Source: Mizuhopecten yessoensis (taxonomy: Eukaryota). Taken from it: a stretch of 64,000 nt of DNA. Position 1 is the stretch's first letter. Each line of letters starts with the position of its first letter. The translations under genes and the position numbers were made by a program. Shown piece after piece: positions 4,977 through 41,100 of the stretch. A model generated the notes under the pieces. It was not told the DNA's origin and made no database searches. It was given only the letters and a program-made list of their open reading frames with translations. The stretch lies in contig NW_018407609.1 in NCBI RefSeq assembly GCF_002113885.1, positions 1,929-65,928 of the forward strand, written 5' to 3'.

Positions 4977-7900
4977 CTCCCTTTGGAAAGCAGCGGACTG
5001 GCTGTAGTACGGACGAGATTTCAGCTCGACCACCTTTTCGCGGTCAGCCTTGGTCATTGGTAGTAGATCCGCCCGACCAATACCCAACCTGGTAATGGAA
5101 TACAGAGATAACACGACAGACTTTCACGACCGTTAACATATTCTTTGGACGGCAGTTTCTTCGTTTTCGTTGGTTTAATAGTACAATACCATGAAAACTT
5201 ATATCCGTGTCCCGGGCAAGATTAAAACCAATTTTTTTTGTCTGGAATTAATCCTACATATAAATCTATGCAAGTCTGCAAGAAACGTGTCTGCATATTA
5301 TTTTAAAAGACGGTAAACGCATTTCAATTCAGTAATGTTGTAAATTTCATTGTTGATTTTAACCAGATAATTAATTCGCAACACCTATTGTCGGTCCTGT
5401 TCAACCGTGGATTGATACGCAACCCTTTTTACAAACATTTCTAAACACTTAAATTGTTTATAAGAATAAGCATTGCCATTGGCAAAGCAGCATACCGTAC
5501 CTTGTGACGTCACTGGGCAAGACACCTATCCACCCGAGGGAAGGTACAGTGAGGTAGCTGGATTCGTGAGATAAGGCCTAAACAGACGAGATTACTACAA
5601 ATTAGTGTATTTTCGTCAGTATTTATTTTTGCGTTTATGTGCCACACGCCCGCCACCCCTTAATTTTACGGTTCTCTCTAGTTGAATCATTGTGAACAAA
5701 ATATATATGTAACGACAAACGGAAAACTTACCCTGGATCCGTACTTATAGATGGACATAATCTCAATACCTACAACAGAAATGTAATATCGACATTGGCA
5801 ATGACTCGCTTACCAGTGGTTTCGATCAACATATCTAAGAGGAGATAGTATGTGTTGGGTCGAAACCAGTTCGCGTTTACGGATACTGCCATTTGGACCA
5901 CATGGACCACATGGACTGGAGAATTCGTAAACCCCTAAAACGTCTAAAATTACTCTGAACACCTTAGATTAGGGCCAAAAATAGCTGTAACAAATTCTCA
6001 GGTCCCTGTGATTTGGACCACATATAGTAAAACCACGTTATAATGCCATCATTTGTCGAGCGAAATTTGTCCTACAGATGTTTGGCAATTCGTCGTGAAA
6101 GATGCAAAAGTGACATTAATAACATGTTGGGGTGTTATATATCATTAGGTGACAAATGAAACGAGGGGCATTATATCAAGATTTAAATGAATCGAGAATT
6201 AACATAAATAAGAGTAGTGGGCTTCATCCAAGTCAACAATCTCCAGCATTGTAACATCGACAAAAACGAATGAGAAAAGTGGACATCACAAGTTAGAAGA
6301 TATGAAAAGCAAGAAACATGTGTAAGTGAGTCTGTGACGCACCGTGAGGATCAGCATCCACCAACACCATGACTGGTATGTGGAAGGAATCCCATAGCTT
6401 CCTAAGCAACATCCGGGTATTCACGTCGGGAAATCCCTTACCCTGCAAAGAACATGTGTGATGTATAATGTGAATACATGTTGCGCCAGAGAACAAGCAA
6501 AGAAAAGAACGAACAGTTATAAATGGAGATGACATACCGTAATGAGTATGGCTGGACCAAGCTTGGTGCAGAATCCGTTGTCAATGAGATTCTGAAAGGT
6601 GGCATCCTTCTCCACAACGAGAATAAACGACGCATCCGTATGCAAATGTAAGAATGTCAAGGTCATAGTAATATGAATATGTATAAGAGAATCGAATGTC
6701 AAAGGTCAAAATAAGGGAATATATATGGCAACAGACGCCAGGATCACAAGGCAGTGTATAATGGTATTGTAGATCAAATATATTTGTATGCGAATAACTA
6801 AACACAATCTGTGACCGTGTCGTACGGATGTGAATGTGTATGCATGTTACATTTTTGTAGGCGTGTCGTGTCCATATGAAGGCATGTCAAAGTCATGAGA
6901 TCGTGGATGTGTCAAGGTCATAAGAACGTAAAATGCAGGCGTGTCGAGGTATCAAGGACGTGGATGTGTCATGTCAGTGTGTGGGTATATCAGGTTAATG
7001 TGAGTGTGTATCAAGGTTTGGTTTAGTATTGTTTAACGTCCTATCAACAGCTATGGTTATTTTTTTATAAGAAGTTCTTTATGCACAACCAATAAAAATT
7101 TCTATGTGACGTTTCGATGACTAGTACGATATGTACACTGTCACCTTCATTAGAAAAATGACCAATGAAGCGTATGCACACAAAGGTGAACAATGTGTAC
7201 GAGTTATCCATAAAATCGATGTCGATTTCGTCTACGCTGGAAACGTATGTACAATAGTTGTTATATATGTACCGAAATGGCTCAATTCAGCTACGCTTTG
7301 TTAACACTTGGTCATAGATGTGCGAGAGTCTATGAGCCCCCTCATCTCGATTTAGAACTGGCCCAGTGCGGCGTATCCAGATGACTTCCTTTATCTGCCG
7401 CTCGAACAGATTGTTCTCTCGTGATTGCCGATTTATTTATTTTGGACTCCGACTGTTTTCTTTCGGATCTGGTGAATCTACGTTTCCAGCGTAGCCGAAA
7501 TTGACATCGATTTTATGGTCAACTCGTACACATTTTACACCTTTGTGTGCATACGCTTCATTGGTCATTTTTTCCGATGAAGGTGACAGTGTACATATCG
7601 TACTAGTCATCGAAACGTCACATAGACAATTTTATTGGTTGTGTAAAAAGAACTTCTCATAATCCATACTTGCCAACCTGAAGAAAATGTTTAGCAATAG
7701 CTATGGTTATTGAAGGACGGCCTCCCCTGTGTGCAAGATGCATACGTGTAGTGTNCCCCCCCCCATGAGTTTCGGTAAGGCATTTTCATTATAAAGGATA
7801 TAACTCAAAGATCTAACGTCATTAGGAACCATCACACCCTGAAATAGAAAAGTTAGCATACACCGTACTGTGATATTATGTTGTTTTATACATACTTACT

Positions 7901-10900
7901 ATCACTAGTGGATGTTTGAAAAAAACATGCGCACTTAAAGCTGACGCATAGCATAAACTCAAACGCAAATCCATGAGTAGGGGTTTGACTATTTGAAATA
8001 ATAGTATACATACTTTATGTAAAATATAAATGGAGGAAATATGTAGGTGGGACTTGGCATAAGGTGAACTTTAAGTGACTGTGAGAGAAAATTGCATACA
8101 TCATTGGTGGTAGGGTTTGGGAGGGTCAGGGACATTTTATTTAATAACTGAATTGCCTTCAGTTGGCACTCATAGTCAATATGAATGCCATTCGAACGTG
8201 TGACGAATTCGAAGTGCTGCTAGGATTCATGTTGAAGGTGTTATGTTCCATCTGGCACCGCTGGTTTTTTTCGTCAAATACGCTGTAACTGATCTTACCG
8301 TACGAGTGGATTTACAGTCGACTAAGTTCCCGTCGCCATCTTGAAACGACAAATCCCCGGCTACGCACCCTTTAGAGGAAGCTAACTAAAAGAAATATAA
8401 ATGGAATTCAGAGCATGACTTGTAAAGCCTACTTAATTTCTTTCTAAACATTTATATAGATACTACAAGTCGTAACAATAACACATGCTGTGCGATCCTT
8501 CTAAAGATATGTTGGCTATTTTGAGAAATAAGAGGCCCATGGGCCTTAACGGTCACCTGACATCCGATTCAAATTAGGACTGTCATCCAGGGGCCAATTC
8601 ATACTTTTCGTCGGTCTGAGTGACCTTGCTGCATCGTCCATTAATTTTTCCTTGTGAACACAATAACTTCAGTAAATATGAACCGATTGGTCAAATTGGT
8701 CCAGTAATCAAACTCATCCAAATTCTCATTGATACAAAGCTGCATACAAAGTTTCATCAAACTTGGTTAACATTTCCTTAAGTTATCCTGTTCACAAGGT
8801 CCAATAATAATACAAAGGGCTATAACTCTGTAAGTTACGTCGAATAATTCCTATTTTCGAACTCGTCCGAGATCTTTTTGTTATATGGCTGCATACAAAG
8901 TTTCATCAAACTCGGTTAACATTTACTCAAGTTATCGTGTTCACAAGGTCCAATAATAATATTACAAAGGGCAATTACTCTGTAAGTTACTTTCGAATAA
9001 TTCCCATTTTCGAATTCGACCGATATCTTTTTGATATATGGCTGCATACAAAGTTTCATCAAACTCGATTAACAATAACTGATATCGTGCTCACAAGGAA
9101 AAGTTAACGCACGCCGCACGACGCACGACGATATAGTGAGCGTTACACATGGGGTATGGAGGGTGGGCAGCCGCTAGAGCGTTTGTGCTGATTCGTATCC
9201 CTGTCGGCCGTGCTGAAGGCTAAGGGGAGACTCGGACTCACCACGTGCAGGCCCCATCGCGGTATGTCCAGTAGACAGGAGAGGTTGTCCACCACCTCGT
9301 CCAGTTGCGCCTGACTCCCGAACCCCGACACATCCTGGTAATAGATGTCTCTGGAGCAAAAATCCAAACGGTGGGTTTAAACGTGTAAATACAGTTTATA
9401 TTGATATGTAATGAGTAACATAGTATTTCAGTGAGTTACATAGTATGTCAGTGTGTTGCATAGTATTTCAGTGTGTTAAATAGTATTTCAATGTGTTACA
9501 TAGTATTTCAGTGTGTAACATAGTATGTCAATGTGTTACATAGTATTTCAGTGTGTTACATTGTATTTCAGTGTGTAACATAGTATTTTTTTTATATATA
9601 TTTCTGAAGTGAATACAATCTTGCATGAATGTATCAACATGGAGGCAAACCTAGCCATGGCTAAGTGATTAGAAAAAACAAAGACAGAGAACAAGCTTTC
9701 CATTACGTAGAAGCAATCCTATATATAATGTATTGTATACACTTCTAATAATCGCGATGAGCACGTTGCTAGTGCTACATATGTCTCACCATTATTCCTG
9801 TCTTGTAGAAATACTGACCTTTTGGTGCAGTGTTTTCCTGTCTGTACCAGTCTGTATATGACACCCAGGACTTTTAACATCAGGCCTGTCACAAAGTAAA
9901 GGATCGGTCTTATGTACACTACCCTGTACATTGTCTTCTGACCACAGGGCCCGGCCAATATGATACACGTATGAGGGGCATATGTAAATAAATGTAAGCA
10001 ATGTGTCTTCTGTCCACAGGGCCCGGCCAATATAATACACGTATGAGGGGCATACGTAAATAAATGTAAGCAATGGGTCTTCTGACCACAGGGCCCAACC
10101 AATATGATACACGTATGAGGGGCATATGTAAATAAATGTAAGCAATGTGTTTTGACCACAGGGGCCGGACCAATATGATATACCCGGCCCATGTGGCGAA
10201 TAAAACTCAATTGCTCGTTATAGCGTTCATAAAAGCACAGGGACATGCGAATTGGTTACTGTTTAGCTATATGTTTGAACCTAAACTGGTGAGTTCAAGG
10301 TAGTATAAGACGTCCAACTTTCGGTAAAAATGCCACCGAAATGATGTGGCATCTACGATCTAAACTCGTTTTATGGGTTTAGATCATCTTTCGATAAAGA
10401 TATCACTACAATGATGGTATAACTTATTTTAGGGGTTTGTATCAATTTTCGGTACGGATGCCAACCGCAATAATAGTATAGCTTGTTAATATCTCACACC
10501 TACCGAGTTTCTTTACAGATGTTTGAGAGCTAAATCTGACTGATGTCATTTTCAGTTGTTTTTCCATCTTCAGTCCATAGTCTTCCTCAAAACTGAAACA
10601 ATAGTCATGAATCTGAATGTGACCGTCTCTTTTTTTCATAAAAAAATAATAATAACAAACTCAGCCTAGAAAAAATATGAACACGTACAAGAATCTACAC
10701 CAATATATGATGTACTTCTCAATTTTTTTCCCAAAATTCAGAATTTCCCCTTCCCCTGCACCACTTCTTCCCAACTTAAGCAACCTCAACATTCACAAAG
10801 AAAAATATCGAGCGTGCCAGTTATTCCAAACTTTTAAATTACATGATTTTTTTTCTACTAGGTCTCTAGTTCCTATTATAATAGGTCAAAATCGAAGGTC

Positions 10901-13900
10901 AATTGATTTCTGTACCATGCTTGGTCAGTCGATGACGTGTTTAAATTGATTTAGCAAAACAAAAACAAATCCTACCTGATATTGTCCCAGGACGTCCGAC
11001 TTTTGTAGACCAATGTTTTGAAATCCTACCTGATATTGTCCCAGGACGTCCGACTGTTGTAGACCTATGTTGTGAAATCCTACCTGATATTGTCCTAGAA
11101 TGTCCGACTGTTGTAGACCAATGTTGTGAAATCCTACCTGATATTGTCCTAGAATGTCCGACTGTTGTAGACCAATGTTGTGAAATCCTACCTGATATTG
11201 TTTCAGGACGTTCGACTGTTGTAGACCAATGTTGTGAACTCCTACCTGATATTGTCCCAGGACGTCCGACTGTTGTAGACCAATGTTGGGGGCTCCTACC
11301 TGATATTGTCCCAGGATGTCCGACTGTTGTAGACCAATGTTGTGAAATCCTACCTGATATTGTCCCAGGACGTCCGACTATTGCAGACCAATGTTGTGAA
11401 ATCCTACCTGATATTGTCCCAGGATGTCCGACTGTTGTAGACCAATGTTGTGAAATCCTACCTGATATTGTCCCAGGACGTCCGACTGTTGTAGACCAAT
11501 GTTGTGAAATCCTACCTGATATTGTCCCAGGACGTCCGACTGTTGTAGACCAATGTTGTGAAATCCTACCTGATATTGTCCCAGGACGTCCGACTGTTGT
11601 AGACCAATGTTGTGAAATCCTACCTGATATTGTCCCAGGACGTCCGACTGTTGTAGACCAATGTTGTGAAATCCTACCTGATATTGTCCCAGGACGTCCG
11701 ACTGTTGTAGACCAATGTTGTGAAATCCTACCTGATATTGTCCCAGGACGTCCGACTGTTGTAGACCAATGTTGTGAAATCCTACCTGATATTGTCCCAG
11801 GACGTCCGACTGTTGTAGACCAATGTTGTGAAATCCTACCTGATATTGTCCCAGGACGTCCGACTGTTGTAGACCAATGTTGTGAAATCCTACCTGATAT
11901 TGTCCCAGGACGTCCGACTGTTGTAGACCAATGTTGTGAAATCCTACCTGATATTGTCCCAGGACGTCCGACTGTTGTAGACCAATGTTGTGAAATCCTA
12001 CCTGATATTGTCCCAGGACGTCCGACTGTTGTAGACCAATGTTGTGAAATCCTACCTGATATTGTCCCAGGACGTCCGACTGTTGTAGACCAATGTTGTG
12101 AAATCCTACCTGATATTGTCCCAGGACGTCCGACTGTTGTAGACCAATGTTGTGAAATCCTACCTGATATTGTCCCAGGACGTCCGACTGTTGTAGACCA
12201 ATGTTGTGAAATCCTACCTGATATTGTCCCAGGACGTCCGACTGTTGTAGACCAATGTTGTGAAATCCTACCTGATATTGTCCCAGGACGTCCGACTGTT
12301 GTAGACCAATGTTGTGAAATCCTACCTGATATTGTCCCAGGACGTCCGACTGTTGTAGACCAATGTTGTGAAATCCTACCTGATATTGTCCCAGGACGTC
12401 CGACTGTTGTAGACCAATGTTGTGAAATCCTACCTGATATTGTCCCAGGACGTCCGACTGTTGTAGACCAATGTTGTGAAATCCTACCTGATATTGTCCC
12501 AGGACGTCCGACTGTTGTAGACCAATGTTGTGAAATCCTACCTGATATTGTCCCAGGACGTCCGACTGTTGTAGACCAATGTTGTGAAATCCTACCTGAT
12601 ATTGTCCCAGGACGTCCGACTGTTGTAGACCAATGTTGTGAAATCCTACCTGATATTGTCCCAGGACGTCCGACTGTTGTAGACCAATGTTGTGAAATCC
12701 TACCTGATATTGTCCCAGGACGTCCGACTGTTGTAGACCAATGTTGTGAAATCCTACCTGATATTGTCCCAGGACGTCCGACTGTTGTAGACCAATGTTG
12801 TGAAATCCTACCTGATATTGTCCCAGGACGTCCGACTGTTGTAGACCAATGTTGTGAAATCCTACCTGATATTGTCCCAGGACGTCCGACTGTTGTAGAC
12901 CAATGTTGTGAAATCCTACCTGATATTGTCCCAGGACGTCCGACTGTTGTAGACCAATGTTGTGAAATCCTACCTGATATTGTCCCAGGACGTCCGACTG
13001 TTGTAGACCAATGTTGTGAAATCCTACCTGATATTGTCCCAGGACGTCCGACTGTTGTAGACCAATGTTGTGAAATCCTACCTGATATTGTCCCAGGACG
13101 TCCGACTGTTGTAGACCAATGTTGTGAAATCCTACCTGATATTGTCCCAGGACGTCCGACTGTTGTAGACCAATGTTGTGAAATCCTACCTGATATTGTC
13201 CCAGGACGTCCGACTGTTGTAGACCAATGTTGTGAAATCCTACCTGATATTGTCCCAGGACGTCCGACTGTTGTAGACCAATGTTGTGAAATCCTACCTG
13301 ATATTGTCCCAGGACGTCCGACTGTTGGAGACCAATGTTGTGAAATCCTACCTGATATTGTCCCAGGACGTCCGACTGTTGGAGACCAATGTTGGGGGCT
13401 CTCCACTACTAATCTGTTGTACCAAACTAAGGACGACGTTTTCTATTTTGTGAAGGACGATTCCTTTAGAAGGCTCAGGTCTTAAATAAATAAAAAAAAG
13501 TTCAAATATTTCCCAATTCTAATATAATTGTATTACACCTGTTAAATTGACCGAAGAAAAAAGGTTTGAGAAAAAGTCTCACTTATCTATATATTTGACA
13601 AGTAGGAAAATAATCACACGACGTTAAAAAACAATACAAATAAGAAAATTACTTTTCGGACACCTTTTTTTGTAATTTTGTTGTCCGTAGAATGAGACAC
13701 ACAATCCAGATAGACGGGGTCAAAATGTATATGAAACGCAATCGATTCTCAAAAACACGGTGGTACTTTTAGATGGTAGATTTCAAAATGTCTATTACTT
13801 TTCTATCACGACAGCAGGGACCCTCAGCGTGATGTTCGCCCTCAATTGGCCTCCTTTTGGTGTCTGTTCAAACTTAAAAGTTTTTGCGTACATGCCTCAT

Positions 13901-19010: not shown

Positions 19011-21019
19011 TTCGCAAAGAATAGAATTTTCGTAAAAAACCACTTGTTTGAGAGGATATAAGATAACATGGCGACCGGAATGTGTTATGATGTAAGATAC
19101 CATGATAATTATGCTTCATAATTTTGCAACAAATTTGTGTCCAATTTTCGGTCTTTTTTAATATTGGAGCATTATGGGAGGTGTTCCTATCTTGGAGGAC
19201 TATGCCAGATAGCAATGATTAGTTCAAAACGTTTTCTTGTAGCTGTATAGAGAATATGAAAAACATAAACGAAAAAAAGGCATTTATTAGTAGTAATTAG
19301 TTGAAATATGGTAGGACAATCGGTCTTGATGATTTCGTCTCTGATGCAACCCAAGATAATGGGATGATGCACCTACACATGGGCAGTGATAAGCGACATA
19401 CAAGCTATCAGGTAAAGAGTATCAGAAAAAATGCTTTCGCGTAATAAATAATTAATAATATGATATTTTCAGGATTAATGAGTATCTGGTGGGAACTGGA
19501 GCTCATGAGTACCGCAAATTACACATGCTTGAAAGGACCATCCTTTTTGTAATAAAAGGATACCTTTATTTTTATTATCTTTTATATGACTACTTGTTGG
19601 CAATGTATCCAGCAACACAGTTGGGGACACCTGCGTCATGAATTTATTTATTTTCACCAGGAAGTGTTTGAAAATAGTCGTTTCTAAATTTGACAAACGC
19701 TTAAGATTTGTCAAGAGGTAATAAAAAGCTAGGGGAGGTTTAATTACTTAGACATTTTATGTGAGCCAAAGTTTGCGGTCGATCGAGTAAAGGATGTAAT
19801 ATGATTTGTTGTAACGTTAATGGATTTTGTTTGTTTCGTTATATCATATGATTGGCATTAAATACCATATAATTACGACTATGAAAGATCAAATTTTCTT
19901 TTCTAATATCAATGATTATATTTCTTTCAAGTCACTTATATCATATCCTTCATATGTCGAAGTTATATACTCGTTTCCCCGAGTAGGCTTCGGGTAAAGA
20001 ATGCGGTACTACTGCGATTTACTTGCTAGTCTTGCTATTACATCGTTTTTCGGACTTTACATGTAGGGTTTATTCGTTTATTCTCGATTCACGATTGCGA
20101 GGATGCTATTTCAATATTGAGGGAAATAATCGATGGAATATATATTTGCGGAAGAGTTGTATTCGCTCATGAGTTTCCTAGCGAATTAAGTTGATACATC
20201 GCGCTAATCAAAATGATTTACAATAACATATATTTGAGGTAAAATTTTAAACAGAAATATTGTAAAAGATCTTGAGACAAAAGGGACTCACAATATCGCT
20301 ATACGCTTTATAAAGCATTTCATTGTGGGACCATTATATCGATCAATCAACAAAACCAAATACATGCCTCGATATAAACAAGTCATATCAATATTACTCA
20401 AACATGCAAAACAAATTTAAACAGCAGGATTAGTTGTCTGGTTAATATGGGAATCGTACTCGACCATTTGAAATTGCTCACAATCTTAAGCTATACTATG
20501 CTTAACTACGGTTTGTGGGGTTCTTAATCTGCCCGCGCATGGATTTTATACAAACTTTGCAATTTTAATGGTGTAGTGAAATCACTTCGGAAACCGATAG
20601 TATTGTTTTAAAGTGTGTAAAGAAAATGCAGAAAGGGCCTGTATTGGTGTTTTTCCTGAAAAATTAGGAGGTACCCCGATATTTGATGTCATAAGTACAC
20701 ACAATCAGGATAGATTGTTGTAGATTGTTCACATTAGGATTGTGGAGACACTAAGCATTCCATTAATATGTATTTTGTATGTTTTAAGTAAGTGATATAA
20801 AACATCAACTGGCTTACCATGACCACACTCAATTAAAAATATCGACCAAACAAATCACACTTGAATATTCAAAGTCTATTTCTTATAGGCTTTCTTAGAT
20901 GTCTCTTCTTCGTAAGTATTTAAAAATAGTTTTAGGGTATTGTTAACATTAGTGAACATTTTTTATTTAAATTGATAACCTGGAACATAGTCTACCAGCC
21001 TGTCTTATATACCTACCCC

Positions 21020-21247
21020 ATCCTCCTCCTCCTCCTTCTCCTCCTTCTCCTCATCAATATATATTGTCATCGTCATAATCATCATCATACGCCATCTTCT
21101 TACACCATCATCATCATTATAATCATCCACAATACACCATCAGTATCGTCATTTACATATTCAGTCCGTCATCATAATCATATACCATCATCTTACATCA
21201 TCATCAACAACATATCAGCATCCTCTGCAATGTATGATGATGATCAT

Positions 21248-21279
<32 letters not shown>

Positions 21280-21352
21280 GCATCAACAATGTATGACAAT
21301 CATCAACATTATCTACAATCATCTTACATCATCATCAACAATATTTCATCAT

Positions 21353-21383
<31 letters not shown>

Positions 21384-21448
21384 AGCAGCATCAACAATGT
21401 ATGACAATCATCAACATTATCTACAATCTTACATCATCATCAACAAAT

Positions 21449-21482
<34 letters not shown>

Positions 21483-21490
21483 CCACCACA
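21020..21490. repeat. Degenerate CAT/CAG/CCT trinucleotide region with an internal duplication
   Basis: (CAT)n(CAG)n CATCAACAATGTATGACAATC occurs twice (~21243 and ~21346). It is present in duplication copy A only. Confidence 0.9.
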
Positions 21491-22276
21491 TTCTTATCAG
21501 ATGAACGCAGGTAATTACATCTTTTAATGACGTAACTCAGTACTCCAGTATATATGCAAATATCTCGTTGACTGTTTTGCTGCCTTTCAAGTTATCCTTC
21601 CAACTTGGCCCGTCTTGCTTATTTCATTTTTTATTTCTTATTGTCTTCTGACTACACTCTCCTTTCATCTTCATTAAGATTTATTTATATTGTCCTACAC
21701 TAGTCACTTATACTATACTACTATAGAATTCTTCTCAGTTTAAAACCTGTATACAGTATGTCTGAAAATTGTTAAGCAAGCTGGCAGAATATATAGCGGA
21801 ACATTTTACTTACACAGGTGACTTTGAGGTCTTTGGTGTGTGTCCCAGTCTAGCTAGTGCGCTAATTATTTTTATATTGCCCCCACAACATGGAATAAAA
21901 TTAAATGTTATGGAGCTTCAAAAGGAAGTAACATGCATGCATTTGATAAAATGCATGTCAGGCCCTGTCGAGCTGTTCTTTTTGCAAGATTCCGAATAAA
22001 ACTTTCTATTCAGCCATAGTATGAATAAGTTTCATAAATCCGTGCGTGGGCAGGGTCTATAGGAATTTTAACATAGCCACGAACACCACCTTTTTAGAAC
22101 ATTACTCATAATCCCTTTCTCTGTTTTGAGGGGGAAACTTCATTTGTGGGAATACCATTTAAAACACAAATGCATTGCCGACACAGCCATTAATCTCAAT
22201 ACATAATTTAAGTGTTTGGTAAATAGTCAAAAGTTCATCTTAAAATCTTCCTAATTTCTAATTTCTTCAAAATAGG

Positions 22277-22346
22277 TATAAAAGCAGCGATTTGTTAACA
22301 TATCAAGTAGAAGCTCGGAGGAGAGAGAGAGCGATCTAAGAGAAAG
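22277..22346 (+). promoter_or_regulatory. TATA box and non-coding exon 1 of BRICHOS gene copy A
   Basis: TATAAAA at 22277, and ~65 nt downstream the donor AAAG|GTAAGT. Conserved in copy B. Confidence 0.65.
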
Positions 22347-22545
22347 GTAAGTCTCTTGTTTCACCAAGGTCTTTTCTAACGTAGCTTAAAAACCAAGAGA
22401 CTCATTTTGTGCTGGAAAGGGAATATGAAAAACACCCAAATTCATTTATTACATTAATTTATTTATTTGAATTATGATTATCAATAACAATATTTCTAAT
22501 GAATGCTTAACACATATAATGTACTTTTCTGAATCTAGGTTGATC

Positions 22546-23667
22546 ATGCGCCTGTTGATCGTAGTAGCAGTTGGTCTATTGGCTGAAATAGGCCAAACAA
22601 CATCAGCAGACGACAGTCATGTCACTTTGGTATGCAGCAGTGCTGGAAACATGTAGAGTGTAATCCGTATCCTAAGTTGTTTTTTTAATATTTCATATCC
22701 TTAGCGTTTAGATATTTGTATATAAGGTCATTTAATTTTCTCGGTACTGATATCTTCTTTCTTTGATGGATATCGCCAGGTTTAAGGCCCTGCGATAAAT
22801 CCTACTTACAAAAATATCCAACATAGGAGGGTCCTCACATCTTTTTTCACATAGTATCTCCATTATTATATAGTCTCATTTTTATCATTAAAATAAGGAT
22901 TCATTTGCAGTTCCATGTAAAATATGGACTGTAAAACGATTTACGCTTTATTGAATTATTCTCAAGTAAATTGTAAGAATGTTATAGCAGAATGTGCTAT
23001 ACTAAAACAGAAGTTTCATCGTTTATATTTTGTAATATACTCGTTTATAAGTTCAATGTGCATTTTTTCGGATTTTCAGTTTAAAAGATTTAATTCGGCA
23101 AAAATTGGCTGCTTGAAATATCGTATCTTGAAACCCAGGAAAATTGACTTTATTAAAATATGGATATTCTCTTGCGGGATGTTACATTTCGTTTCGATAG
23201 TACCATATACGATTTCAAAAAGAAAAGAATTCAATAAATATGATTAAGCAATGAATGTTTTAACAAAATTTGTTATGGTCCTATAACAGATAATGATGTA
23301 ATATTAACGACAAACTGAATAAAGCCCGGCAGGGCTTTATAAATGTTTGAAATAAGAAGTGATAAAAGTGTGGTGAAAAACTTAACTTCATTTACTGTAA
23401 TGCGTGTTCATAAGAGTTGCTTTCTTATTCATTATGTATCTATTTACCTTTTTTATTTTTTCAAAAAACAAAAATTATTTGGAAACTGCTTATAGAATTT
23501 TGTCTCCGGAATTTTTCCTCGTGTAGTTCCTGTCTCAGAATATCAGTACAGCAGAGGGGGACGTGTTTGCTGTCAACATGGAAACGGATAAAACCGAAGG
23601 GAAGGACATTGTGCACTCAACTATGAATGGGAATGGTTCCCAGACGGTGGTTACAGACCATGCACTG
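22546..23667 (+). pseudogene. Partial duplicate (coding exons 2-3 only) of the BRICHOS precursor gene; possibly an alternative 5' cassette
   Basis: Exons 22546-22629 (MRLLIVVAVGLLAEIGQTTSADDSHVTL) and 23527-23667 (FLSQNISTAEG...TDHAL) have intact splice sites. No downstream exons of its own were found. Confidence 0.8.
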
Positions 23668-23879
23668 GTGAGTTGCATCAGTATATTCAGCTCACCTGTT
23701 TAAAAAATAGAATAATTGGGGGTTAGTAGGTGATGTGAGGGCATACATTGGTTTTGACTTCTTCGCAATGCCGGAACAACAATTCTATGATCGGAGTACT
23801 TTGGTTTTTACCTTTGTAGAGTCACATAGTTGTGTGTGTGTTTTTTCCAAATTGTGAATGCAACACTTATGTGATAAAA

Positions 23880-31527: not shown

Positions 31528-32765
31528 CGTAGGTTAACGGGGTTGCTATTGCTAAGGCCGATTTTCTGGATAAGAAAACTATCCTTCCAATTGATCGAAT
31601 AGGAATTGCACATGTAAGGAGTATCTGGTTTGAACAGGGCTCATGAGAACAAAAAGGAGACATTTTTATATTCTCTTTTATAGGACTACTTGTTGGCGAC
31701 ACCACACTTGGGGACACATGCGTCATGTTTTTTTAATTTTCACCAGGAAGTTTTTGAAAAGGATCGTTTCTAAATTCGACAAACACTTCAGATTTGTCAA
31801 GAGGTCATTAAAAGTTAGGGGAGGTTTAAACACTTATATATTTTATGTGAGCCGCTGTTTGCGGCTGATAGAGTAAATCATGTAATATATTGTAATGTCA
31901 TAGTGTATCATTGGCAGTAAATACCTTATAATTACCACTATGAAAAAAGTAAAAGTTTTTTTCTAATAACAATGATTAGATACCTCATATGTCGAAGTTA
32001 TATAGTTGTTTCTCGATAAGGTTTCGGTTAAAAATGCGGTACTACTTCGATTCACTTAGGTCTTGCTATTACATTGTTTCTCGGACTTTGTCGGTAGGGT
32101 TTACTTGTTTATTCTCGAATTCATGATTACGAGGATGCTACTTTAATATTGAGAGAAATAATCGACGGAATATACATTTGCGGAAGATTTTTATTCGCTA
32201 ATGAGTTTCCTAGCGAATTAAGTTGAACATTTATATCTCGCGAAAACAAAATGATTTACAGAAAAAATAAATATGAGATAAAGTTTTAAAACGAAATATT
32301 GCAAAAGACCTTTAGACAAGAGGGGCTCACAAAACCGTTATACGCCTTATAAAGCATTTCATTGTGGCACTACTATATCGATCAATCAATAAAGCCAAAT
32401 ACATGCCTCGATATAAATAAAACATATCAAGATGACCCAAACATGCAAAAAAATAAAAATAGCGGGTTAACTTGAAATTATTTATTATATATATTTTAAG
32501 TTGTCTGGTTTATATGGGAACTGTTCTTTAATCGACATTGAAAACTGTTCACGATCTTCAGCTATAATATGCTTAACGACGGTTAACATTTTTAGAACAT
32601 GACTCATCACCCAATCTTCTGTATTGAGGGAAAAACATAATTTCTGGAAATACCACGTAGAACACACATTTATTGCCGACACAGCCATAAATCTCAATGT
32701 GTAGACTCAAGTGTTTGGTAAATAGTCAAAAAAAATTATCTTGAATTATTCCTGGTCAAAATAAG

Positions 32766-32830
32766 TATAAAATAAAGCGTTTTGTTAACATATCAAGTAG
32801 AAGCTCGGAAGAGAGAGATCTTCGACAAAG
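32766..32830 (+). promoter_or_regulatory. TATA box and non-coding exon 1 of BRICHOS gene copy B
   Basis: TATAAAA at 32766 and donor AAAG|GTAAGT at 32830/32831. Confidence 0.65.
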
Positions 32831-33034
32831 GTAAGTCTCTTGTTTTATCAAGATAATTTTTAATATTGCTTAGAAACCAAGACATTCATTTTGTTCTGAA
32901 AGGGTATAACTCAAACTCAATTATTATATTAATCAAATAATTTATTCATTTCAATTATGATTATAAATGACTTATTGCAATATTTCTAATTACAGTAAAC
33001 ACATATAATGTACTTTACTTAATCTAGGTTAACC

Positions 33035-36000
33035 ATGCGCCTGTTGATCGTAGTAGCCGTAGGTCTGTTGGCCGTAATAGGTCAAACAACATCAGCAGAT
33101 GACGGTCATGTCACTTTGGTATGTAGCAGTGCTCAAACTATGTAGAGTGTAATCCGTATCCTATGTTGTTGTTTTTTGTTTTTTGTTTTTTTGTTTAAAA
33201 ATATTTCATATCCTTAGCGTTTAGATATTTCTATATAAGGTTATTTGATTTTCTCGGTACTGATATCTTCTTTCTTTGTTGGATATCGCCAGGTTTAAGG
33301 CCGTGCAATAAATCCTACTAACAAAAATATCCGACATAGGAGGGTCCTCACACCTATTTTCACATAGTATCTCCATTATTATATAGTATCATTTTTATCA
33401 TTAAAATAAGGATTCACTTGCAGTTCCATGTAAAATATGGGCTGTAAAACGATTTAGGATTCATTGAATTATTCTCAAGTAAACTGTAAGAATGTCATAG
33501 CAGAATATATTATACTGAAAGAGAACTTTCATCGTTTATATTTTGTAATATACTCATTTATAAGTTCGATGGGCATTTTTTTTTTTGGATTTTCAGTTTA
33601 TCTCAGTAATAAGAATTGAAAGATTTAATTCGGCAAAAATTGGCTGCTTGAAATATTGTATCTTGAAACCCGGGAAAATTGACTTTATTAAAATATGGAT
33701 ATTCTCTTGCGGGATGTTACATTTCGTTTCGATGGTACCATATACGATTTCAAAAAGAAAAGAATTCAATAAATATGATTAAGCAATGAATGTTTTAACA
33801 AAATTTGTTATGGTCCTATAACACATAATGATGTCATATTAACGACAAACTGAATAAAGTCCGGCAGGGCTTTATAAATGTATGAAATATGAAGTGATAA
33901 AAGTGTGGTGAAAAACTTAACTTCATTTACTGTAATGCGTGTTCATAAGAGTTGCTTTCTTATTCATTATGTATCTGTTTACCTTTTTTATTTTTTCAAA
34001 AAACAAAAATTATTTTGAAACTGCTTATAGAATTTTGTCTCCGGAATTTTTCCTCGTGTAGTTCCTGTCTCAAAATATCAGTACAGCAGAGGGGGACGTG
34101 TTTGCTGTCAACATGGAAACGGATAAAACCGAAGGGAAGGACATTGTGCACTCAACTATGAATGGGAATGGTTCCCAGACGGTGGTTACAGACCATGCAC
34201 TGGTGAGTTGCATCAGTATATTCAGCTCGCCTGTTTGAAATATAGAATGCTTGGCGGTTAGTATGTGATGTGAGGGCATACATTAGTTTTGACTTCTTCG
34301 CTAAAATACACCCACCAGGGTTAGGTTTCTGTTTAAGGCATAATCTATAAACAGTTGTCTTTCTGTCATCTGCAATCGAAATTAATTACAGGACATTTAG
34401 TGATATTTTAAAGTAATTATCCAGCGTTTAATACGACACCCCGTTTGTAGTACATGGAAAATCTATTCCAGTAAACGTTATGTAAAAGGCATCGCATGAT
34501 ATGGAAATGGAAAAAATATATCTTTTACATAACGTTAGCTGAAATAGTGATTTTTTAAATTGCCTTGTGTGTTTAATAAATCATGCTTAATAGAATGAAT
34601 TGAGAAGAATAGAGTAGAACGCGTTTCAAGTTGGAATAATTGATGCCTATTAATTTGCGTTGTTCTTTTGCAAAAGATATTCTTAAACGTTAATAAATAT
34701 ACATGAAGAAATGACTTACTTGCCTGTTATTTTCATCCTATTGAGTTATTTTGTATTCTAGCAGGGCAAATGTTCGCGGTTTATATACAGCAAACTATTG
34801 TGTGTATTACATTTTGCAGAACTTCATTCAATATATTCTTTATTATATTAGCCTTATACATTTTGCTTACCGAGTTATTAAATTAACCGTACAAGTCACA
34901 AATTATTTTCCTATTTAACAAAAAAGAGCAATATGCAATAAAGCGTCCTTTTTTTGTTAATATTGTCCAGATAGAAGCATCAGTAGGTGTGGTAAGCTTC
35001 AGTTAACTAAGTGCCCTGTCTTACAAGGAATCCTAGATCCGACCCCGAATGAATGTTTTAGCAAATGACATAATAGAATAATATATTTCACTGTTTCTTT
35101 GAATTTTTCTTTCTTCTAAGAATATGCGAGTTGTGATACCAGACTCAGAATCCGAGGATTGTCACTTTTTGGAACTTGACGAAGAAGAAAAGACAGAACC
35201 GTCACTTGAAGAGGACACAGAAGGCGTAGCCAAGGTAAGACATCTTTGATTTTCATTTTCATTCTTTTTATAGTTCTTTATATGTACTACATCATTTCGC
35301 TTAAACATTTTTCCAGTATAACAGATAAGTATAAAGGGTAAGCCTAATCCCTCCATTTCGGGAAAATGTTTGGACCATAATTTTCAAATATTTTACATAT
35401 TGTAATAACATTTGTAGAAAACTGGCGGTGTGGGACTTTTTTGAGCTTTGACTGATATACTGGTGAATATATGTTACCATTTTCATCGGGATAGGGGTAT
35501 ACTTATTTGACTAAGCTGAAGGAAAACATATCGATTATATTTTTTGAAATTATATAATAACATCCTAAATATCTTCTTTATTAAAAGTGATCGCAAACTT
35601 GTATTTTTCATTGGAACAAAAAAATTGAAATGAGTAGAGGATATCACTGTTTTTTATGCCCTGTCTTTTACTATCAAGATTCTTTGTAATGAATCTACCG
35701 ACTTCATTTCTCAACATATTGCATAAACAATTACACAAAGGTCAAATCTTAGTATATATGCCTCGCAGGAGTTCATATTTCAGGGTCTCGGAGGAGTCAA
35801 CGCCAATATAACTGTTGCTATTTATAGTTCAACCATAAGACCAATGGGGCGTTCATGTCTTACAGACGCTTTCTATTTTAATGAATAACAAATGGTTAAA
35901 TAATTTTATATTGTTCATTAAGTATCCACAAGTTGAATTTTATTGCTATTTTCGAGAAAAAGAAAAAAATGGATTTGTTTATTAGTTTTTGTCGTCATAA

Positions 36001-38143
36001 AGACAATAGCCTCTGTGAAAAGCTTGTTCATCTATGGCAGAAAATATTGTTAAGACAAAGAATGCGACGTCACATTAAGAAAAAAATGTCAGGGTTATTG
36101 TGACGTAATAATGAATAACGTTCATTGTTTACTATCATTACACTACACCAAACTCTCTGATCGCTCGGATTAAAAACGTAAAGATTATTGTATATCGTCA
36201 TAACTGATGTTAAAATAAGAAGGATACGGGCGGGAAATTTTATTTCAATATCTTTTAAAATCGATATCTCACACAAATCAAGCTGAAACATAAGAAATTG
36301 GAAAGCATACACACGTTACTATTTAATTGACATATCATAGCTTACTACTACCAAACGCGTTTTCCTAACTATTCATTTTTTAATAACAAACTATTTCATA
36401 AGATACATCTGAAACGTTGACAAACGATACTTTAGCAATGTTCTAAAAATGGTTTATTGATACAATTCTCAAGAAACATCAGCTGTAGACATTTATTCCA
36501 TAAATATGTTGCTTTTGGCTTGAAGAATACTTATAATAAGCTATATAAAAATGCTACTGTGCAGAACAGAACGGCTTGGAACTTTCGCGGTTACTGATAT
36601 TCAACTATTTCACGCTTGTTACATTTCATGGTTAGAAGAATCCGTTCCTGCAATATCGTTCTTTTTCTGGTATAAAGAGGTCGAAGTTTCATCCTCAATA
36701 GTGTATTTATTAAAATAGAAATCCCCGCCAACATTTCCGGCTATACAATATATTTATGCTGTTGCATCGCTCATCGCATCTTTACTGAATCCTCTATATA
36801 TTGTGATAGACGATGGAATCTGCTGTGACGGAAAATGTCAACGCCACTGAGGAGAAGACTTGTTTGTATGATGAGGATGAACCCGTCATGTCAGAGGAGT
36901 TAAAGACTACCATTACAGCCTTGTGTGGGCCTCGAAAGATTCGTCACCTGACCCGGAAGGGCGAGTGTCAGGATATACCACAGGACGGGAGTCAACAAGG
37001 TAAACAAGTACATATGTAATTATATATAAGGGGTGTCCCAATAAGCCTTGAGTGTATAACGATATATTGCAATACCGAACGTATATATTGGATATGTATC
37101 CCGATACATAGTCATAAGAAAATAGTTTCAATTTAAAACGAAATCGTTGTCAGAATCAAAGTTAAACTGTCAAACCAATCATCGATTACGAAATTCTAAC
37201 GGATTCCCACTACTAGTAATAACCTGCGTTATGGTTATTGATAAGCTTTTGAAAAAATTACAATATGCCTGTGTATTGCGATATACCGGTTTCCTGATAT
37301 ATTTTGACTGTCCGAATATATTCAATGCCGGTGGAATAGATATGAATGGAGAACTCATATTTTAGCAATAACGGGTCTTGCGTCGTGGTGTTCAGAAGTT
37401 CTAAATATAACAGTTAACTTCATAATATTTAGCATGGATGCTATTCAAATTGGGGCTGAAATTGTGGGTTACGAGTATCTATAACATCTTGAAATTTAAA
37501 TGGTTACGCTCCTGATTTTATCTGCACATTAAGATTTATCATTGACAGAATCGAAGGCACACTGATATCAAAACCAGTCGATTACGCAATTACGCTGTAG
37601 CGCGATTCAACTTTATTTTTAATCACAGCATTGTTCTGTGATCACAGGTGTGCAAGATTCCAGACCAGTCAACTCGTTTCATCCACACAAAAAGCGCATA
37701 CAGGGACTTTGCATGTCTGAAATGAATAAAAATTGCAGAATAGATAATCATGTGATATTGAAAGCAGTACTCTTGAAATTTGATATAGAGGAAATTTCGA
37801 TCTGCCCATGATAACAAATAATGTCTATCAACGTTTTGAAAAAACAGACTTGTTTGTCGAAATACTTCATATTGCCAAGTGGATGTCTGAATTGTTTTTA
37901 CTTATTTTTCTTTTTCCCCCTTATTTAGATGACGACGATAACGACTCGGAGGTGAATTCTGAATCAGGACTTCTCGTCCGCCGTAAAAGGTTTTGGGGAA
38001 GGTGTCCCTACAGATGCAAATGGTTCTGTCGTAGGGTGACCATATGCTGCTACAGGCGATCGTGCCGCTACTTCTTTTGTACGTGGAGGAGATACTGTTA
38101 CCGTACCACACACTACTACCTAAAATGTGGGAGATTTTGCTAA
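33035..38143 (+). CDS. Secreted BRICHOS-domain precursor of a cationic cysteine-rich (putative antimicrobial) peptide, 247 aa
   Basis: GT-AG exons 33035-33118, 34062-34202, 35121-35234, 36810-36999 and 37929-38143 join in frame (744 nt). Signal peptide MRLLIVVAVGLLAVIGQTTSA. BRICHOS-like motifs TVVTDHALNMRVV...DCHFLEL and ELKTTITALCGPRKIRHL. An acidic linker and RRKR are followed by FWGRCPYRCKWFCRRVTICCYRRSCRYFFCTWRRYCYRTTHYYLKCGRFC. Confidence 0.85.
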
Positions 38144-41100
38144 TTCGAAGACCAGACCAGGACAAATTTAATAACCAATTAGACATGATCATCATAATTT
38201 GCAATTATCGCACACGTTATTTACACGTAGCTATTATGACATTGAATTGTGGACATCACAATTTTGGGGCCAGCATCGAAGTACGGATAATTATTAACTG
38301 CGCTTGGCATTTACACATGTTGATCTAATTTAGGAAATTTGAAAATAATTTTCGTTTTGACTGTAGAGAGAAAAAAATATTGTCCTGCTTAAAAAGTATT
38401 CCCATATATTCGTAGCTAAATTAAGACGACTATAAAACTCTCGTTAGATTTGTTTAATTCATTTAATTCTTTGCTTCGATGATTGCTTTTTTAACATTCC
38501 TGTACTGAACTATTATGCTTTTCGTCTCTTGTTGAGTTAACAAAGTTTTTACTCTTTCTCCTACCATTCATTGGATTGTCTCCCTTTTTATCAGTTTAAG
38601 ATTTATCTGTTAAGTCCTAGGGTATGCTTTCTATCCCAACCTCTATGGTATGACGGATAGCATGTGGAAAGAAATGACACATTGACGTCACGCAAACAAT
38701 AAAATATGATGTCACAGTCACCTTTCGACCGGCGCAAATTAGCATGTAAAACTGTCTCAAATGCTGAAAACAACCTTTTCACAGAATATTCAAAAGCTCT
38801 TAAAACTTCGCCATCAGTTATTTTTAGATTTATTTTTATAATTAACTGTAATTAAGCTTACTTATGTGTCCTTTGCTTATTTTTTCTCTTCACATTTTTA
38901 TAATATATATTACATATGCGAAATTCATTGAATGCGGTTGTGACAAATTAACTCAATAAATAAAAGAAATTAACTTGTCTTTGTGATTCATTGGTACACG
39001 GCGTTAGGAGCCGATCCTTGTTACTATTTATGAAAACTTTTCGGAGAAAATATCAGGAAGTGTAAGTAAAATTAATTAATTCATGATATTTTCTTTTAAA
39101 CGTTAAGATCTTTCCGAATTTCAAATGGTTTCTGATTGAAATTCGCCACTTGGCAGAGCTGGTTACTTTATAAAACACTATCTTGTTCCCATAAAATAGC
39201 TGTCCAATCATTTTTTAAATCAATCATGAACCGAAAATAAGGATGTCAAAGAATCTTTTTTACAATATTTTCGGTATTCAAAGCGATTCTATTCATGCAT
39301 TTTATCCCAGATTTGGATGTACTAACGCACATTTCTTTTAATATAAGTTTCATATTTTACAATATTAGTTACAGGATTCTATTGGGTTCCCGATGAATAA
39401 CGGCGACATGAAAGTAACTGAAACCCGTATGACTTACTTTAACATAAAAAACCAATTCGAAACGATACTGGCTTACTGTCGATTTTCATCTTTTTACATT
39501 GTTTTGAAATGTCATAAAACACTTTGGTTGATGCTATGTGATACTTTGCTTAAATACTTGAGTTTGTAGCAATAACCGATTTCTGCGCTTTGTGGTTAAC
39601 TTGCTCTAATATTTGTGATATAATCGAGGATAGTATGATACATATCAAAGATACAGTCAAACCTGCTCATGTGACCATTAAGAAACCACCTGTGTTGTAA
39701 TGTTCTCCATTGTAAGGATTTCATTATGAAATTAAATTGTATTAGCAGACTACCTGTGTTAAGAGACCGCGCTGGATCTTCCATTGGCCGGTCTCACGTA
39801 TTATATCCCCAATCCCTTTTCATTAATAATTCATTTTTATATTTAATTTCGATCCTTTTTGTTTCAACATGAAAGTTACTTATTTTTGACTTGTGACCGG
39901 ATACCGTTAACAAATGACCTCACTGTTCATCTGGAACTATCTGAAATGATAATAGTCATGATGTACCACTTGGTAATGATTTTCCCATATGAATTGCTAT
40001 GCTCAATCTGGGAATAAAACCCTAACAATATGTGTCAACAAGTAAATACATAAGACTAAGCTTTCTAGTGTACAATACACCTACATCATTTAGTCCTGTC
40101 TGGTAAGATTTTATTTAATCAGTTTAAACATACCTTTGATTTAATACACCAGGCAGTATTCAGACTTGTCAGAATCATTCTGATGATTCGTTGTCCTTTT
40201 ATACATAATTTTATGAAAAAATAGACCCATGAGCATCCGTTGTTTACATCAAAATATGTTTTCTTAAAAATTCTACGACAGACGTCATAGGTATGAGGAG
40301 TGCAATTGTGGCAATCTGTCTCAGGATCATATTCCAGCAGGTGAAGTGCGTGAAGTTGACACATTCTACAATAAAATCATGTTTTTGGTTATATTTATAT
40401 CAACATACATTATTGCTGAAGACATATTCATTAAGCCACAAACAGTAGTTTTTTTTTAATTGTTTTTGAAAATTTCGTGAAATGATAAATGACATAATCA
40501 TCATTTTCCATAGAGTTTTGAAGAAAGATGATGATTAGGGGATGGGTTGTATTCCATTTTTTTAAAGTTGTGTCTGTGAAACTGACTTCAATTCCTTCCA
40601 GCACAGTTTTGCATGGAACACCTAAATGAATTGAAAAAAAAGTCAAAAGTTGTAAATTTGTAACACAACAAACGGTTTGATATGCGCTTATTCCGTTTGA
40701 TGTAATTCTACATATGGTTCGGAACATTTGACATAATATATCATTATTTTGTCCTTGGTATAACAAGTTCTTTTAAATCTTTTAAATATGTGCTCACTTA
40801 CTCTAAGACAGAACAGTATTGTATTCAAAACAGTTTCTCATAAACATTTGTAAATGTTATTCGTTATACGTTATAGATGCGGCTTTCCGGCTGTGGTGGC
40901 ATTTAGTCCCAATCAGTACCAACATTATATTGCAGGGAATTGTACATTACCAAACAAACAGATAAAGTCCTTATTATCATGTTTAACAAACCTTAATTGA
41001 AAATGCAATCACTTGTGAGAGTGTTAGTTTATTATTGAAGAAAAGAAGAAAAATAAAGCTGATCCCGATTGAAGAAAAGTAAATTAATTATAGGTCTTCC

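Follow-up and report, generated by a model that had tools for sequence, protein, structure and literature searches.

The 64,000-nucleotide (nt) stretch of the Mizuhopecten yessoensis genome analyzed here (RefSeq assembly GCF_002113885.1, contig NW_018407609.1, positions 1,929 to 65,928; hereafter the window) includes LOC110456194, a gene with five coding exons located between positions 33035 and 38143 of the forward strand. We read it, with a confidence only a little above even, as an expressed secretory prepropeptide gene confined to scallops, with a likely BRICHOS-type proregion and a C-terminal host-defence hairpin that would be released from the precursor.

In the pathway that we propose, a signal peptide would direct the precursor to the endoplasmic reticulum, where the acidic proregion would fold as a beta-sheet-plus-helix domain, most likely a BRICHOS domain of a divergent kind. 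In it, Asp72 would close one strand, Cys89 would lie two strands further on and Cys152 would end a short helix. This domain would keep the basic, aromatic and beta-prone C-terminus soluble and net-neutralized during folding. Cleavage by a furin-type convertase on the C-terminal side of RRKR197 would next set free a peptide of 50 amino acids (aa) with a charge of +13, presumably a long beta-hairpin with its turn at peptide residues 27-28 and disulfide rungs between residues 25-30, 19-36, 9-46 and 5-50. Cys13 and Cys20, which are species-specific and do not form a cross-strand pair, may be free or engaged in intermolecular bonds. By analogy with the arenicin-type peptides, the released hairpin would act on microbial membranes as a host-defence peptide.

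A spliced and expressed gene of a scallop-restricted family

The first-pass annotation of the window, which was made from the letters and their open reading frames (ORFs) with no database searches, had described an unannotated precursor of a probable mollusc encoded in five in-frame exons of 247 codons. Most of this description was borne out. The source is the Yesso scallop, and the coding exons (33035-33118, 34062-34202, 35121-35234, 36810-36999 and 37929-38143, + strand, stop codon included) have AG..GT borders and add up to 744 nt in frame, whose 247-aa product is identical letter for letter to XP_021362446.1 (RefSeq, "uncharacterized protein LOC110456194", Mizuhopecten yessoensis). The exons were searched singly; for every search at full length, the query was the database protein that the spliced model matches exactly. 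The term "unannotated" was mistaken, as both this RefSeq entry and a GenBank counterpart (OWF46086.1) exist. The gene is already annotated, yet uncharacterized, and no paper naming it or its orthologs was found in a literature search with four LOC identifiers.

Three RNA runs, each from a different study, yielded one assembled contig apiece on 32900-38300, and each of these contained the four predicted junctions exactly, with zero mismatches and no variant letters. The contig depth was 1395 in run X3, 47 in run X4 and 7 in run X8, the last of which is labelled as a second organism. The contigs also added a non-coding leader exon that ends at 32830 and is spliced to 33028. In the X4 and X8 contigs the string ...TCGGAAGAGAGAGATCTTCGACAA directly precedes 33026/33028, the same string is found at 32805-32828 of the window, and the end of the leader, up to 32830, reads ...GATCTTCGACAAAG. 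A TATA-like sequence, gtataaaata, lies at about 32764-32773, approximately 30 nt 5′ of the leader start. The 5′ leader of the X3 contig (at 33026) differs from that of the X4 and X8 contigs (...GACATATGGGGGAAATCTTCGACAA vs ...GGAAGAGAGAGATCTTCGACAA); the variant part had no match in the window at two or fewer mismatches and may represent an allele, an alternative leader exon or an assembly artefact. The elements of the transcript, including the 5′ and 3′ untranslated regions (UTRs), are as follows.

32795 to 32830 (start approximate), + strand: leader exon, 5′ UTR, with donor GT at 32831; from the X4 and X8 contigs
33028 to 33118, + strand: start-codon exon, ATG at 33035, aa 1-28; predicted signal peptide aa 1-20 (33035-33094)
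34062 to 34202, + strand: coding exon 2, aa 29-75; conserved sequon region IVHSTMNGNGSQT, candidate Asp D72 in VVTDHAL, and the N-terminal part of the BRICHOS-like sheet
35121 to 35234, + strand: coding exon 3, aa 76-113; predicted strands 77-82 and 89-93, invariant C89, start of the acidic disordered loop
36810 to 36999, + strand: coding exon 4, aa 114-177 with the last codon split; sequon NAT, C131, predicted helix 142-152, C152-G153, predicted strand 157-161 (IRHLT), C166
37929 to 38143, + strand: coding part of the last exon; acidic linker, LVRRKR (RRKR at 37979-37990), 50-aa peptide (37991-38140), stop codon (38141-38143)
38144 to 38885 (end approximate), + strand: 3′ UTR, its end set by the reach of the contigs, which run 281-585 nt past 38300

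The layout that had been predicted, consisting of a signal peptide, an acidic prodomain, a furin-type RRKR site and a cationic Cys-rich C-terminal peptide, is present, and the gene that encodes it is expressed. The precursor begins with a hydrophobic N-terminus, MRLLIVVAVGLLAVIGQTTSA, whose core, LLIVVAVGLLAVIG, corresponds to a helix of aa 3-15 in the AlphaFold2 (AF2) model. Judging from the sequence, the signal peptide is probably cleaved at the end of aa 20.

Profile searches recovered family members in Pectinidae only, two each in Argopecten irradians, Pecten maximus and Ylistrum balloti and one in M. yessoensis. With the whole family or the proregion alone as the query, no relatives outside scallops were found among 5.8 billion proteins. 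A phmmer search with exon 5 against 1.84 billion representatives retrieved a 254-aa Argopecten protein and one spurious low-complexity match, and a word-indexed search from the Argopecten protein led to the 247-aa M. yessoensis protein. The same five coding exons are found in the Argopecten, Pecten and Ylistrum relatives, a degree of sharing that is far beyond chance, and the loci show tandem pairs, as a rule beside SPO11. The Ylistrum RefSeq models LOC132560085 and LOC132560084 end before the peptide exon; these truncated models read into the intron and miss the last exon, and intact peptide exons lie just downstream (L001:13748-13942, encoding RQKR and 48 aa, and L003:14518-14715, encoding RRKR and 50 aa). 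The proregion is under purifying selection, with a non-synonymous divergence (dN) of about 0.1-0.3 against a saturated synonymous divergence (dS), and the peptide changes about twice as fast at non-synonymous sites (median dN of 0.43 vs 0.22 in the proregion). Since dS is saturated (>1), only the contrast in dN is usable, and not a dN/dS test for diversifying selection.

Two copies in the family are decaying. The Argopecten copy at L006:2410-6241 has a frameshift just past RRKR and a Cys30 to Gly replacement, and in Pecten LOC117326558 (L004:16908-19228) a transposase-like N-terminus replaces exons 1-2 and several of the ladder cysteines are gone. In addition, a diverged exon-2-like fragment (GDM[DN]SVSIESGGTDGKDILHSAMNGN) is located in antisense orientation upstream of each Pecten paralog (L002:6545-6625 and L004:12333-12476, both on the - strand). 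These fragments were considered as a third gene and rejected; as no other family exons lie nearby, they are probably isolated relics duplicated together with the gene.

The existence of degenerate copies in Argopecten and Pecten, and of a partial 5′ duplicate in the window, could be taken to mean that LOC110456194 is itself a decaying or artefactual gene, either a chance chain of ORFs or a pseudogene, with no peptide ever produced. We regard this as hardly credible and close to refuted already. The ORF is uninterrupted, every splice site is canonical, correctly spliced RNA is abundant in three studies and free of variant letters, and the proregion is maintained by purifying selection with intact orthologs in four genera.

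The cationic peptide and its predicted cystine ladder

The composition that the first-pass annotation gave for the C-terminal peptide agreed with our counts. The peptide has 50 aa, including 11 Arg, 2 Lys, no Asp or Glu, 10 Cys and 15 Phe, Trp or Tyr residues, and its charge is +13. It is preceded by RRKR (aa 194-197 of the precursor), after which cleavage by a furin-type enzyme would be expected. The sequence LVRRKR (L192-R197) is invariant in four full-length orthologs, and the site in Ylistrum copy 1, RQKR, is still of the form R-X-K-R. Across scallops the cargo is 48-51 aa long, with a charge of +8 to +15 and 13-18 aromatic residues. No solved structure in a PDB search and no database protein outside the family resembled the mature peptide. 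A protamine-like sperm protein (rich in Arg, Cys and Tyr, 50 aa) was also considered as an identity for the peptide, but a signal peptide, N-glycosylation sequons and a furin site speak against it, and it was rejected.

AF2 predicted one long hairpin with strands at 207-223 and 226-242, where the model reaches its highest scores, with a predicted local distance difference test score (pLDDT) of 66-84. As the turn of the hairpin is at peptide residues 27-28, residue i faces residue 55-i. The eight cysteines common to most members, at positions 5, 9, 19, 25, 30, 36, 46 and 50, form four mirror pairs (i+j=55) in one register, a symmetry that was obtained in 4.5e-4 of the trials when 8 Cys were placed at random in 50 positions. 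Moreover, the orthologs lose and gain cysteines in pairs. In Pecten copy 1, Cys 5 and 50 were lost together and 13 and 42 were gained together, and in Ylistrum copy 1 Cys 9 was lost with 46 and Cys 25 with 30. The mirror positions and the paired losses and gains support a four-rung cystine ladder (5-50, 9-46, 19-36 and 25-30) in the predicted hairpin. The beta-hairpin antimicrobial class comprises short cationic peptides with one pair of antiparallel strands that is closed by at least one intramolecular disulfide (PMC13001179). The scallop peptide is cationic, is predicted to form a single hairpin and has putative disulfides backed by covariation, but its length is 50 aa as opposed to 12-25 aa in the described families, and both its hairpin and its bonds are predictions.

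The first-pass annotation had described a 10-Cys peptide. Ten cysteines are indeed found in M. yessoensis, but only eight of them are conserved in the family, C13 and C20 being extra. These two lie on the same strand, facing Tyr42 and Tyr35, and so would not pair with each other in this fold. Extra cysteines recur only at positions 13, 20, 35 and 42, that is, in the two mirror pairs 13/42 and 20/35. They are found at 13 and 20 in M. yessoensis, at 35 and 42 in Ylistrum copy 1, at 35 in Argopecten copy 2 and at 13 and 42 in Pecten copy 1, and of these sets only the one in Pecten can pair inside the hairpin. The arrangement outside Pecten suggests free thiols or intermolecular bonds, and the recurrence of the extra cysteines may mean that they are put to use repeatedly, perhaps to link one molecule to another. 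The corresponding codons in the window are the following.

38027 to 38029: peptide position 13
38048 to 38050: peptide position 20
38093 to 38095: peptide position 35
38114 to 38116: peptide position 42

The acidic proregion and the BRICHOS question

The proregion (aa 21-193, approximately 170 aa) contains 43 Asp and Glu against 12 Lys and Arg residues, for a net charge of about -31, and carries conserved N-glycosylation sequons. The BRICHOS family is defined by low sequence identity, a conserved secondary structure, one Asp and two disulfide-forming Cys residues (PMC9627735, PMC6265681). Its core consists of strands 1′, 2′, 1-4, 4′ and 5 plus helix 2, with the Asp ending strand 2 and the Cys of strand 4 bonded to helix 2 (PMC9714404). 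In the AF2 model the proregion has strands at 28-35, 41-51, 54-60, 66-72, 77-82, 89-93 and 157-161 and a helix at 142-152. After extra N-terminal strands (28-35 and 41-51), the relevant elements are, in order, a strand that D72 closes, one that C89 opens, a loop that is long, acidic and disordered, a short C131-containing strand, a helix with C152-G153 at its end and a last strand. The Asp and two Cys that the first-pass annotation had placed in BRICHOS-like contexts hold those places in the model, in which D72 ends strand 66-72, C89 begins strand 89-93 and C152 ends helix 142-152. Position 72 is Asp in five of the six proteins that cover it, and its equivalence to D105 of proSP-C is given by weak structural alignments only. 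C89 and C152 are invariant in all seven members and are candidates for a disulfide; C131 and C166 are also invariant and could form a second bond. Five features of the family as described in PMC9714404 are present, namely, the signal peptide, the furin site, a cargo with nested cysteines in a predicted hairpin, the Cys residues of strand 4 and helix 2, and the Asp ending strand 2. Because several independent details agree with the published definition of the family, we lean towards BRICHOS and consider homology of the proregion to this domain, as far as the models go, fairly probable.

The BRICHOS fold is an antiparallel sheet with the short helix 2 packed on it and the last strand parallel to strand 4. 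The structure of proSP-C (2YAD), the only crystal structure of a BRICHOS domain, was the top match in three of the five structure searches, although its scores over the searches were weak (Foldseek E 0.37-0.44, VIA Z 4.9-5.4) and tied with those of LolA, ependymin and fatty-acid-binding-protein folds. When the full-length model was compared with 350,542 chains using Foldseek, 2YAD occupied ranks 1, 2, 3, 5 and 6 (E 0.37-1.0, TM score about 0.5 on the target). A second look at this model with VIA placed 2YAD at rank 1 (Z 5.3, root-mean-square deviation (rmsd) 3.5 Å, 69/79 residues) and gave Z 3.9 for the Bri2 "BRICHOS monomer" 8OVI, and in the VIA wide search against 48,161 representatives 2YAD was again at rank 1 (Z 4.9, 65/77 residues). 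Overall, proSP-C was the best or joint-best match, with Z 4.9-5.4, rmsd 3.1-3.5 Å and 61-69 of 77-79 residues aligned. The elements predicted in the same order as in 2YAD are a strand with the Asp, two strands with a Cys, a long disordered loop, a short helix ending with Cys-Gly and a last strand. The two differ in that identity is 14-15% with no profile match, the scallop domain is longer by three N-terminal strands and shows an acidic disordered segment where helix 1 would be expected, and the scallop cargo is C-terminal, whereas that of proSP-C is N-terminal and transmembrane. Every structural alignment stops at model residue 160, which corresponds to 2YAD residue 197, so that C152 lies eight residues before the chain end. 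The conserved helix-2 Cys of proSP-C, Cys189, would lie at that same place; we treat this as a lead and not as a test.

A number of observations weigh against our overall reading of the gene. A Pfam-A hmmscan at E≤10 found no BRICHOS (PF04089) or OAF match in the seven members or in the five single exons, the precomputed Pfam field of every member was blank, and such an absence is what the first-pass annotation had itself named as speaking, at the sequence level, against its BRICHOS label. What stands of the label is the agreement of the Asp, the Cys pair and the succession of strands and helix with the core, together with the weak matches to 2YAD. PDB profile searches with the family and with the proregion found nothing to 2YAD, 8OVI or 8RNU, and PDB sequence searches returned chance-level matches only (an RNA recognition motif of nucleolin and complex I subunit B18). 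The AF2 models were built on seven sequences, and their mean pLDDT was 49 (full-length) and 51 (domain-only). When the domain-only model was used, Foldseek ranked ependymin-related proteins first (E 0.04-0.17, probability 0.95-1.0) and 2YAD at 14, and VIA ranked LolA/LolB first (Z 5.8, 93-107 residues) and 2YAD at 6 (Z 5.4, 61 residues); the scores lie within one Z unit of each other, and all VIA Z values were below about 8, the level regarded as meaningful. The D72 position is occupied by Asn in one Argopecten paralog (P0004). With respect to the peptide, the odd number of cysteines in some copies (nine in Argopecten copy 2) and the two non-partner cysteines in M. yessoensis are a misfit for a simple closed ladder. 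Profile searches of 5.8 billion proteins detected no homology to the annelid precursors or to other BRICHOS proteins, no direct pairwise comparison having been made. None of the reads of X24, a raw polyA run, fell on the exons of LOC110456194, which indicates that expression varies strongly among samples. Finally, the antimicrobial activity of the released peptide is something that we infer, purely by analogy.

Some of these observations would be accommodated if the proregion were not a BRICHOS homolog but a half-barrel similar to LolA or ependymin, or a new beta-rich fold. The precursor and peptide would be the same, and the likeness to the annelid proteins would be due to convergence on an acidic propiece that neutralizes a basic cargo. 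The blank Pfam and PDB sequence profiles are in keeping with this possibility, as are the domain-only searches, in which ependymin-related proteins led in Foldseek and LolA/LolB led in VIA over more residues. However, 2YAD, a single small PDB family, came first in three independent searches with the full-length model with 84-87% of its own chain covered, and the positions of the Asp, the Cys and the Cys-Gly are on the right elements, whereas the LolA and ependymin matches have no shared motifs and 4-13% identity. 2YAD lacks additional strands found at the N-terminus of typical BRICHOS domains (PMC9714404), and this would account for the longer alignments of larger sheets. We think it rather unlikely that the proregion is something other than a BRICHOS domain; a non-BRICHOS proregion is, in any case, compatible with the same peptide function.

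Design parallels, possible function and genomic setting

The annelid BRICHOS antimicrobial precursors consist of a signal peptide, an acidic BRICHOS proregion and a C-terminal cationic Cys-containing peptide, with a total of 202-239 aa (PMC6265681, PMC13001179). The scallop precursor has the same layout as those of arenicins, alvinellacin, capitellacin, nicomicins, HfBRI-25 and AmBRI-44a, which are approximately 200-240 aa long (PMC6265681, PMC9756803, PMC11767717, PMC13001179) and whose mature peptides, like the one predicted here, are mostly disulfide-locked beta-hairpins rich in Arg and aromatic residues. According to reviews, BRICHOS antimicrobial peptides come from polychaetes and Urechis only (PMC9756803, PMC11767717), and the host in our case is a bivalve mollusc rather than a marine worm. 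The cargos also differ in size, the scallop one having 50 aa with four predicted ladder disulfides and two extra cysteines and the annelid hairpin members having 20-22 aa with one or two disulfides. The first-pass annotation had contrasted the peptide with polychaete peptides of one or two disulfides, but BRICHOS-type cargos are not limited to that number, since AmBRI-44a and the mature polypeptide of OAF have four each (PMC11767717, PMC9714404). That of AmBRI-44a is, however, described as defensin-like and not as a single hairpin.

OAF, the 11th human BRICHOS member, gives rise to a mature polypeptide that is released by furin and whose nested cysteines lead to a predicted extended antiparallel hairpin with four disulfides (PMC9714404). 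It resembles the scallop precursor in its signal peptide, in a BRICHOS core (putative in the scallop) that is extended by N-terminal strands, in the furin-type site and in the long nested-Cys hairpin cargo. Along the chain, the domain and cargo lie at closely matching positions, residues ~27-172 and 204-273 in OAF and ~28-161 and 198-247 in the scallop protein. The OAF cargo has 70 aa and is conserved from fly to human, whereas the scallop cargo is hyper-cationic, fast-evolving and restricted to Pectinidae. As an analogy, the OAF cargo is the closest design parallel of the scallop peptide, a resemblance in design and not a membership. Since the OAF profile is unmatched and the OAF cargo is slow-evolving and pan-animal, the link was treated as an analogy or a very distant kinship. 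Single cationic hairpins with a disulfide ladder are also found in hepcidin, tachyplesin, protegrin and theta-defensin, and hepcidin has four disulfides as well (PMC13001179). These peptides have 17-25 residues, come from unrelated precursors with no BRICHOS-like propiece and have no sequence similarity to the scallop peptide. Nonetheless, hepcidin, at half the length of the scallop peptide, illustrates that a four-disulfide hairpin can be antimicrobial (PMC13001179).

A different view of the peptide is that it is not antimicrobial, and serves in signalling or matrix binding like the cargos of OAF and chondromodulin, or as a structural or adhesive protein of the byssus, shell matrix or egg coat. 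Its contents of Tyr (14%), Arg (22%) and Cys (20%) would suit the latter role, as an abundance of these residues is typical of bivalve adhesive proteins, and the range in depth from 0 to 1395 among runs suggests tissue specificity. The cargos of BRICHOS proteins have diverse functions, and that of OAF is also a furin-released four-disulfide hairpin (PMC9714404). On the other hand, a charge of +8 to +15 with no acidic residue and a fast turnover on a fixed frame of cysteines, charge and aromatic residues are the usual signature of host defence. The OAF Pfam profile was unmatched, and whereas OAF shows strong conservation of its cargo throughout the animals (PMC9714404), the scallop-specific peptide is variable. 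A role other than defence appears improbable to us. The host-defence reading can be extended to propose that scallops have a BRICHOS-chaperoned defence family, the first outside annelids, with a design parallel to that of OAF and a cargo that would be the longest natural single beta-hairpin antimicrobial known (50 aa, four rungs that are swapped, lost or gained in pairs). This extended proposal is made tentatively, as a possibility that falls short of an even chance.

The promoter, leader, exon 1 and exon 2 of LOC110456194 are duplicated 10.5 kb upstream, where 19966-23766 is similar to 32001-34301 with 79-87% identity. The splice signals and ORFs of the duplicate are intact, and its exon 2′ is followed by no copies of exons 3-5 of its own.

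22311 to 23667, + strand: partial 5′ duplicate, composed of leader′ (22311-22347), exon 1′ (22546-22629, two aa changes) and exon 2′ (23527-23667, identical protein)

Exon 1′ of this upstream copy is the start of an older GenBank model, OWF46086.1 (272 aa), while the copy further downstream is the one in RefSeq and in the RNA contigs. Further upstream, SPO11 exons match the window at 6613-13466 (- strand), as compared with Ylistrum balloti L001:1-3709. The Ylistrum SPO11 carries TP6A_N/Toprim Pfam marks and is located upstream of the peptide gene on the opposite strand. The head-to-head arrangement of SPO11 and the peptide gene is kept in both Ylistrum and Mizuhopecten, which indicates that this neighbourhood is older than the split of these scallops. 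The X24 reads in this region were confined to a repeat in intron 1 (33624-33985), at 95-99% identity, and showed joints at 33802/33824-33826 where the strand switches, as well as T-rich loose ends and, at 33786, an A>G that is nearly fixed. They appear to come from other, transcribed copies of an inverted-repeat element and not from LOC110456194. The window also holds two single N positions.

Should the peptide have no antimicrobial activity, LOC110456194 would still be a well-supported, expressed, lineage-specific secreted peptide gene. If our reading is correct, BRICHOS-type antimicrobial precursors would extend from marine worms to molluscs, and the cultured Yesso scallop would possess an undescribed family of defence peptides with relatives in the bay and king scallops. 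The 50-residue, four-rung hairpin and its natural "rung-swap" variants could serve as a scaffold and as a series in which to examine the effects of length and cross-bracing on activity, stability and toxicity. A basic, aggregation-prone hairpin made together with an acidic BRICHOS-like domain would also be a simple natural system for the idea of an intramolecular chaperone. If the parallel with OAF is true, the module formed by a BRICHOS domain and a furin-released, disulfide-laddered hairpin would be ancient in animals and would have been recruited repeatedly for immunity.

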